Source of the DNA: Pelomyxa schiedti
Taxonomy: Eukaryota > Protista > Evosea
Length of the DNA: 64,000 nt
Assembly (NCBI GenBank): GCA_020536535.1
Contig: JAHLWZ010000253.1
Coordinates: forward strand, 1 to 64,000
Reading direction: 5' to 3'
Translations under genes and position numbers: made by a program
Shown here: one piece after another, positions 28,701 through 30,630 of the stretch
Layout: every line of letters starts with the position of its first letter
Numbering within the stretch: position 1 is the first letter of the stretch
Notes under the pieces: model-generated
Told to the model about the DNA's origin: nothing
What the model saw: the letters and a program-made list of their open reading frames with translations, nothing else
Database searches by the model: none

Positions 28701-30630
28701 ACCAACTTTGGAGAAGCTGGAAGGTGCAGAACAGGAATATCTTCCATATCAAAAGCTTCATCCCAATCATTATCCACATCTGGTTTTATGTTCACCTTTG
28801 GAGGTGGTGGTGCAGCCTGGAACATGCTATTGCTCCAGTTAAAAATAAACCACTAACAAAGGATTAACTTCTCCAGAGACACTCGGCCAGAAGGCTTTGT
28901 TTCAATTGAGGCAATAGGTTCAATGGCTACTTTGGATATAGGTTTTTGGGGTGATGGTTGAGGGACAGCTTGGCTTGTTGCTTTTTGGGGCTTTGGTGCT
29001 TTCTTAAGTTTCTCATTTTTCAGTTTGTTTATAAGTTGTCCAACACCAGGGTCATCGTCAGTTGCATCCGGTCCATGCGGAACTTCTGATTGAGCATCCT
29101 GGGGAAATGGAAGAAGGAGAAGTGGGAGAACAAAGACAAACCACAGTTCTTTTGGCATCCGTGATCCATCTGTGTTTCAACAATTGTTGTGCACCAAGAC
29201 GTCTTGAAGGGTCTTTTTGCAAGGCATCCATCAGCCATTCACGTAAACTCTTGGTTGATCCACTTGAGTAACAGAAATTACATAAACAAGCAAAGTACAC
29301 AGCAATTCACCACAGCCATGAAAAAAAATTTTCATACAGGTGACACAGTCTCTGGTATTGGTGGAGAGTCATCCTGTACAATGCGAAATAAAGCGGACAT
29401 TGGTACAAGGTCAAAGTATGGGGGAGCCCCTGTAAGGAGCTCGATAACAGTGCAACCGACACTCCTGAGCTCAGTTAATGCAATAAAATGGGGAAAACTG
29501 AGGCAAGCAATAATAAATGGGGTGGAGAACAAACCAGATATCAGACTTTGTGGTAGCTCCACTCAGATCAATGATCTCAGGAGCCACTTGTGAAGTGTTA
29601 AAGTTTTTTTCAAAAAATTAACCAACTGACATACTCCAATAAGGAGACCCCATAACAGACATATTATTTGTTTGGTTAACCAGAGAGGCAACCCCAAAAT
29701 CAGCTATCTTGATTTCACTATCCTTAGTTACCAGTATAACAGTAAAGGAAAACAATTTGTGTGTGCATTTATGGGTTTTTTTAAACAAAGTGGATATAAA
29801 TGTTGGCAGCTTTGATATCCCTTCGAAGTTGTCAGTCATAGGAAGAAGGGGATTTTTCACCATACCTATGTATGACACCTTCGTCATGTAGAAAAATTAA
29901 TCCTTCCAGAACCTAGTTAGGGTAAGCCATTACATCAGCTGAAATTCGGTAAAATACTTGAGCTATGTAAACTGCAATTAACAGTTCTGGAAAATTTCCG
30001 TATTTTTTTAATATACTCTGCAGTGAACCATTCTCAATGTATCTATAAATCATCAATCAAGATCCCTCAAAAAATTAAAACTACTCACTCCATAACAATG
30101 TTGAGATGCTCACTTGTTTGACAGTATGTGATATATCGCACAATGTTTTTGTGGTTTAAACTTTCCAGTAGATCAATCTCAGCCTACACGGCAAGGTGCG
30201 GTTACCAAAAGAAGGATTCCCTTAGAAATTTCGTTACCAACGAACCATTATATTATCCAACTGTTCTTTAGGCAGATTGGAGAGCTGAATTTGTTTTATA
30301 GCAACAAATTTGGCAGTTTCAAGGTGCAACCCTGAACACAGAAAGTAAGTGATTACTAAGGCAGTCACATTAAGATGAACCTTGGTACACAGTCCCAAAA
30401 CCGCCCTTTCCAATTTTGGGGCCAATTGTCTAAAATTACACAGAAGCAGGAGAAAGAAAGCAGAGCAAGAGTAAGAAATGCATTCCCACAATCAAAGAAA
30501 AGTGAAAAGTAACAAAGTAGTGGAAGTGAAAAGGGGAAAGGGGAGCACAGAGTGATCTTGCTACACACATAAGTTCCTTTTTTGGTTTTGATTCGCTGAG
30601 TCGGTGGTTGAACGCCCGGAGTCGGGGCAT
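25736..30630 (-). CDS. STE-group Ser/Thr kinase of the Cdc15/Cdc7/SepA/MAP3K-epsilon type with C-terminal ARM/HEAT repeats
   Basis: [104 protein letters not shown]. Confidence 0.9.
29734..29797 (-). other. U12-type (minor spliceosome) AT-AC intron, 64 nt
   Basis: Minus strand ...AAC ATT T|ATATCCAC...TTTTCCTTTACTGTTATAC|TG GTA ACT; removal restores kinase subdomain VIb NILVTKD. Confidence 0.9.

Follow-up and report, generated by a model that had tools for sequence, protein, structure and literature searches.

A probable U12-type AT-AC intron in a Pelomyxa schiedti kinase gene of the Cdc15/SepH/SepA family

Introduction

Is a 64-nt interval that begins with ATATCC and ends with TATAC, within a protein kinase gene of the archamoeba Pelomyxa schiedti, an intron of the minor (U12-type) spliceosome, or do most of these bases belong to an ordinary GT-AG intron? 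The question arises from an earlier note on this DNA, which proposed that the interval is a U12-type AT-AC intron and that this archamoebal genome keeps minor splicing. The first descriptions of AT-AC U12-type introns came from animals and plants (Hall & Padgett 1994; Tarn & Steitz 1996, by the account given of them in PMC10639083). In P. schiedti, 90 minor introns have been reported, a relatively high number for Amoebozoa (Larue & Roy 2023, PMC10639083; intronIC), and the minor spliceosome of this archamoeba is therefore already known. The published assembly comprises 52.4 Mb in 5337 scaffolds, and its annotation holds 149,016 introns, 98.41% of them GT-AG and 1.59% GC-AG, together with one GT-GG intron and no AT-AC intron (PMC8887013). 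An AT-AC intron in the kinase gene is therefore unannotated and, since the set of 90 derives from the public annotation with no AT-AC introns, it is very probably not among them.

Results

The kinase gene and its introns

The window, by which we mean the whole 64-kb stretch of P. schiedti DNA that was analysed, carries on its minus strand a Cdc15/SepH/SepA-like gene. The parts of the gene that matter here are as follows.

30429..29000, minus strand: kinase-domain part of the gene, with 11 exons separated by 10 introns (43-88 nt).
29865..29821, minus strand: upstream GT-AG intron of 45 nt, GTATGG...CGAAG, which splits the Arg codon of HRD.
29820..29798, minus strand: micro-exon of 23 nt encoding (R)DIKAANI(L), adjoining the AT-AC intron on its upstream side.
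29797..29734, minus strand: AT-AC intron, probably U12-type, 64 nt, phase 1; the Leu codon is split T|TG between ...AANI and LVTKD.
29797-29792, minus strand: 5' splice site ATATCC of the AT-AC intron, followed by AC at +7/+8, where the consensus has TT.
29752..29742, minus strand: branch-site motif TTTTCCTTTAC of the AT-AC intron, 8 nt before the last intron base.
29733..29635, minus strand: downstream exon of 99 nt, from (L) to SPYW, Pkinase HMM positions about 130-163.

Removal of nine GT-AG introns and the one AT-AC intron from the kinase-domain part gave a stop-free reading of 290 aa, defined by coordinates and ending beyond HRWITDAK, and matches to the Pkinase profile were found exon by exon. 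A pseudogene was ruled out because all 11 kinase-domain exons are open. Beyond the kinase domain the gene has an ARM-like region and reaches about 25900, and in a tblastn search with P0016, a EukProt transcriptome protein of 1392 aa that is also among the orthologues compared below, residues 26-1097 were matched along 30429-25976. Both features of the Cdc15/SepH/SepA/MAP3K-epsilon family, an N-terminal Ser/Thr kinase with HRDIK.ANIL.TK and a long ARM-like C-terminal region, are present. Proteins related to P0016, like several orthologues that were fetched with a single exon (e.g., P0107 and P0067), either bear the name cytokinesis protein sepH, Cdc15 or Mitotic Exit Network kinase or contain PF24768 ARM_ARMC5.

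When the species' own genome was searched at the DNA level, the locus itself was the sole match, with no paralogue or second haplotype. The homologues listed for region 100-290 of P0016 were from other species only, with no P. schiedti protein or transcript fragment among them, and the 89-aa ORF that spans the junction had no match in a homologous-protein search. Metagenomes yielded no close relative of the gene, only generic kinases with at most 67% over short stretches, and no Rfam family was matched within the window.

Four GT-AG introns of the gene (window 30088-30043, 29634-29587, 29534-29465 and 29337-29250, minus strand) are common to the kinase genes of Pelomyxa, Paraphysoderma (L009) and Basidiobolus (L022), at positions after IVME/ILEY, SPYW, SDIW and ETVSP, and these introns, held in common with fungal orthologues, are probably ancient. 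An intron at NI|L, the position of the AT-AC intron, was absent from the Paraphysoderma and Basidiobolus genes, the two fungal orthologues compared. In the same comparison of intron positions, orthologues P0071, P0080 and P0102 lay on intron-less ORFs or transcripts. For the intron after ...PIPETVSP, AG acceptors are present at window positions 29263 and 29250 (minus strand), 13 nt from each other, and the frame is preserved with the distal one alone (exon start 29249).

Splice signals of the probable AT-AC intron

Read on the minus strand, the intron has the 5' end ATATCCAC and the 3' end TGTTATAC (TATAC). The [A/G]TATCC core of a minor 5' splice site is present, and the full ATATCCTT consensus, which has TT at +7/+8 and pairs with U11 and U6atac, is not matched; with AC at these two positions the 5' site would form only about three pairs with U11. 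The TCCTTRAC box of minor introns has its branch A about 10-15 nt from the 3' splice site. Here a branch box, TTCCTTTAC, lies near the 3' splice site at 29750-29742, the A of its TAC (29743) being 9 nt short of the final intron base, and it has T at the position of R in TCCTTRAC. The branch motif and the GUAAGGA box in P. schiedti U12 are complementary in sequence. Removal of the 64 nt restores the frame of the kinase, such that HRDIKAANI is followed by LVTKD and the conserved protein is recovered. The earlier note had given the interval as 29734-29797, with a branch-like motif at 29742-29752 about 9 nt from the 3' end and a bordering exon of 23 nt at 29798-29820. Re-reading of the sequence returned the same coordinates and spacing for all three on the minus strand, with the 45-nt GT-AG intron preceding the micro-exon.

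An overlapping GT-AG candidate

All GT, GC and AT donors around the site were enumerated in combination with all AG and AC acceptors. The statement in the earlier note that no GT-AG pair restores the frame proved to be wrong, as the following pair is also frame-preserving and stop-free.

29786..29723, minus strand: GT-AG candidate, GTTTAAAA...AACTAAG, 64 nt, shifted by 11 nt relative to the AT-AC intron.

Removal of this candidate gives ...ANIYIHF|DSEIK, with Y-I-H-F in place of L-V-T-K, and the peptide over the junction reads ANIYIHFDSEIK. Because a second frame-preserving solution exists, the reading frame cannot choose between the junctions, and the case for the AT-AC intron therefore rests on protein conservation and on the quality of the splice signals. 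The donor of the candidate, GTTTAA, has A at both +5 and +6, positions occupied by G and T in seven of nine local donors. The GT-AG donors nearby are loose (GTTCAT, GTTTGT and GTATTT). By a rough estimate, an in-frame GT..AG pair would be found within +/-20 nt by chance in about 10-15% of cases.

Conservation across the junction

The junction was judged by the residue frequencies in columns of aligned orthologues together with local translation of the window coordinates, the exons having been searched one by one. Orthologues were fetched with a separate exon (window 29338-29463, minus strand, the ...PIPETVSP exon) in a HMMER scan of 1.84 billion representatives, and since this query exon differs from the one under test, the choice of orthologues did not depend on the residues at issue. 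The scan gave 1452 matches at E<=0.001; the best 150 of the 1452 were used, and 52 of these reach upstream to the catalytic loop. Among these 52, HRD.K..N. is followed by L in 51, then by one of T, S, I, V or A, then by T in 42 and K in 47. None of the 52 has Y-I-H-F, and Y, H and F were each absent at their own position; I was found at the second position in seven. The column scores were +11.3 bits for LVTK versus -9.4 bits for YIHF, a difference of about 21 bits in favor of the AT-AC junction, which is indicative only, the rows being related. At the junction region P0120, a Mastigamoeba-style model, reads HRDIKGANILVTKEG. The Leu that follows N-I is presumably the equivalent of PKA Leu173, a residue of the catalytic spine. 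In the Pfam Pkinase profile, the downstream exon was aligned from position 130, and the H of HRD is position 121 in a second P. schiedti kinase; the AT-AC junction thus lies, without a gap, at the boundary of positions 129 and 130.

Minor-spliceosome components in the genome

Rfam models of the minor snRNAs were searched against the whole assembly (52,367,397 bases, 5337 contigs). Genes for U11 (67.5 bits, contig C820), U12 (58.2 bits, contig C475) and U6atac (62.7 bits, G000:C841:53279-53397; L003:1501-1619) were all found over the Rfam gathering score. The earlier note had held that a lack of minor snRNAs would count against its reading, and all three of these genes score above the Rfam cut-offs. 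The 5' AAAAGGG box of U11 is intact and the U12 gene keeps AAUGAGUAAGGAAAA (GUAAGGA box). Another U12-like locus, at G000:C859:7899-8035 (L002:1501-1637), scored 41.1 bits, below the cut-off; its 5' half is identical to that of the C475 gene, including the branch-site box, and its 3' stem-loop is shortened, so that it may be a variant or decaying copy.

U4atac gave no match even at E<=10 in the scan of the assembly, in which 50 of 1768 first-look candidates were scored. No six-frame match in the assembly was found for PDCD7/59K (PF16021) or zf-U11-48K (PF05253). Since the genes of this species have about seven introns on average and short exons, the absence of matches to minor-specific proteins means little.

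The U6atac gene, the sole one detectable, reads GAGCCGAGAGA against GAAAGGAGAGA in the Rfam consensus, such that AAGG is replaced by GCCG. The AAGG box of U6atac normally pairs with positions +5 to +8 of the 5' splice site, and AAGG stands at this box in all the Rfam seed-like sequences. A pattern search for an AGAGA-GGTTAGCA core found no second U6atac copy.

Similar introns elsewhere in the genome

Within the window, the pattern ATATCC-N(25-55)-TTCCTTNAC occurs once, at the AT-AC intron, with 0.01 occurrences expected from dinucleotide shuffles. Genome-wide, the loose pattern ATATCC..TTCCTTNAC..AC gave 14 matches versus 10 for a reversed control (six with another reversed pattern), so the loose pattern is barely enriched and its count is not significant by itself; this is weak evidence, and motifs alone are no proof of function. 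The strict pattern TATCCTT..TCCTTRAC..A[CG] (AS ending) gave 23 matches versus nine for its reversed control. Twelve motif matches were fetched and their flanks inspected, and several of them lie at conserved coding junctions. The sister introns considered here are the following.

Contig C819: 55 nt, in a kinase gene, between SFVGTD and EYIAPEV.
Contig C579: 52 nt, in a kinase-like gene.
Contig C790 (G000:C790:85333-85401; L019:401-469): 69 nt, AT-AG, in a kinase gene, between IIHR and DLKSDN.
Contig C734: 60 nt, box TTCCTTCAC, followed by a Creatinase_N_2 match from profile position 1.
Contig C625: 56 nt, in an IPP-isomerase-like gene, 5' splice site ATATCCAA with AA at +7/+8.

The C790 intron reads ATATCCTT...TTCCTTTAC...TAG and has the same variant of the branch box as the intron at 29797..29734. 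It splits the Arg codon of HRD, and its upstream exon matches PK_Tyr_Ser-Thr at 3e-8. For a minor intron, the AT-AG ends of the C790 intron are non-canonical. For the C625 intron, the downstream exon had IPP isomerases as its sole PDB matches (E 0.03). The spacing from the box to the 3' end is 7-10 nt in the five sister introns, versus 8 nt at 29797..29734. Most of the sister introns have the full ATATCCTT, which is absent from both the 29797..29734 intron and the C625 intron. With non-TT at +7/+8 in C625 and T at the R position in C790, both departures of the kinase intron from consensus thus occur in other introns that are likely real minor introns, and TT at +7/+8 seems to be relaxed in the P. 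schiedti genome.

An identical stretch with U12-like motifs is found on two contigs at nearly the same offset (G000:C842:55875-55936 and G000:C862:55859-55920), and these are probably duplicate or haplotype contigs of this single-cell assembly.

Discussion

Protein conservation, the splice signals, the snRNA genes and the sister introns together support the reading of 29797..29734 (minus strand) as a true U12-type AT-AC intron that interrupts a P. schiedti kinase gene of the Cdc15/SepH/SepA family, a reading which on this sequence evidence we consider highly probable. The core of the earlier proposal, namely that an archamoebal genome with minor splicing has such an intron, is thereby supported by the orthologues, by the U11, U12 and U6atac genes and by the sister introns. 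Excision would take place at exactly these bases and would be the work of the minor spliceosome, not of the major one. In the mechanism that we envisage, U11 would pair with the ATATCC 5' splice site and the GUAAGGA box of U12 would pair with TTCCTTTAC, which stands 8-9 nt before the 3' end. The 64 nt would be excised by the minor spliceosome and the 23-nt micro-exon would be joined to the next exon, by which the catalytic loop and the strand that follows it would become continuous.

The overlapping GT-AG pair could instead be taken as the real intron, of U2 type, with ATATCC and TTCCTTTAC being present by chance. It is in frame, stop-free and equal in length at 64 nt, inside the 43-88 nt range of the gene; the local donors are loose, the loose U12 pattern is weakly enriched genome-wide, and AT-AC introns are absent from the published annotation. 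Yet Y, H and F at its junction are found in none of the 52 orthologues (among the best 150 of 1452), at a penalty of about 21 bits, and Y would displace the near-invariant Leu after HRD.K..N. In addition, it would have to be by chance that 11 supposedly intronic bases spell out L-V-T-K in frame, and GTTTAA deviates at +5 and +6, the best-conserved positions of the local donors. Based on these observations, we regard the U2-type GT-AG intron as very unlikely. Use of both introns is less probable again: in that case, the minor spliceosome would yield a functional LVTK isoform, and the major spliceosome would sometimes yield a YIHF isoform whose catalytic core is altered and probably impaired. 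In animals, U2 and U12 sites can compete where introns overlap, and the two introns here are both in frame and of equal length. However, the donor of the GT-AG intron is weak and, with a chance level of about 10-15% on our rough estimate, selection for an in-frame GT-AG pair need not be invoked.

The least probable of the alternatives, in our view, is that the AT-AC boundaries are right and that the intron is removed by the major spliceosome, as in the rare U2-type AT-AC introns. Such removal would be in keeping with the lack of U4atac and minor-specific protein matches in the assembly, with the divergent box of U6atac that pairs with the 5' splice site, and with bases other than TT at +7/+8. 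The U4atac and protein searches are weak evidence (exon-fragmented or filtered), however, and genes for U11, U12 and U6atac are present, the functional boxes of the first two being intact. The 5' sites of U2-type AT-AC introns resemble ATAAGT, and these introns have no TCCTTRAC box close to their 3' end. They are like the Pelomyxa intron in their terminal dinucleotides but lack its ATATCC and TCCTTRAC signals, whereas the kinase intron has ATATCC and has TTCCTTTAC 8 nt from its end.

The probable U12-type AT-AC intron of the kinase gene resembles the classical introns of this class in its AT..AC termini, its ATATCC 5' site, a TCCTT.AC box that lies 8-9 nt before the 3' end, the lack of a separate pyrimidine tract and its location in a conserved gene of the information or cell-cycle type. 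It differs from them in being only 64 nt long, in having AC at +7/+8 and T at the R position, and in adjoining a 23-nt micro-exon. With the 90 reported minor introns it has in common the species, the assembly and the kind of intron. The sister introns on C819, C790, C734, C625 and C579 are alike in length (52-69 nt), in the ATATCC start and in the 7-10 nt that lie between a TTCCTT.AC box and the 3' end, and several likewise interrupt kinase genes.

TT at +7/+8 of AT-AC 5' splice sites is otherwise near-invariant. Because U6atac has GCCG in place of AAGG, and because at least two AT-AC introns (29797..29734 and that of the IPP isomerase) are without TT at +7/+8, we speculate that the recognition of minor 5' splice sites may be altered in P. 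schiedti, although we consider this unlikely. If this speculation is correct, and the snRNA and the splice sites have co-evolved, the species would provide a natural variant of the recognition code of the minor spliceosome.

The kinase intron leaves the known distribution of the minor spliceosome unchanged, and it adds one more unannotated AT-AC intron, well supported, in a species already known for minor introns. The AT-AC subclass is systematically missing from the public P. schiedti gene set. Since the annotation is limited to GT-AG and GC-AG introns and one GT-GG intron, the suggestion of the earlier note that gene finders confined to GT-AG would mis-annotate this kinase is a reasonable one. 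At this locus, such a predictor would produce an intact-looking protein with four wrong residues in its catalytic core, an error to which a check of the reading frame would be blind.
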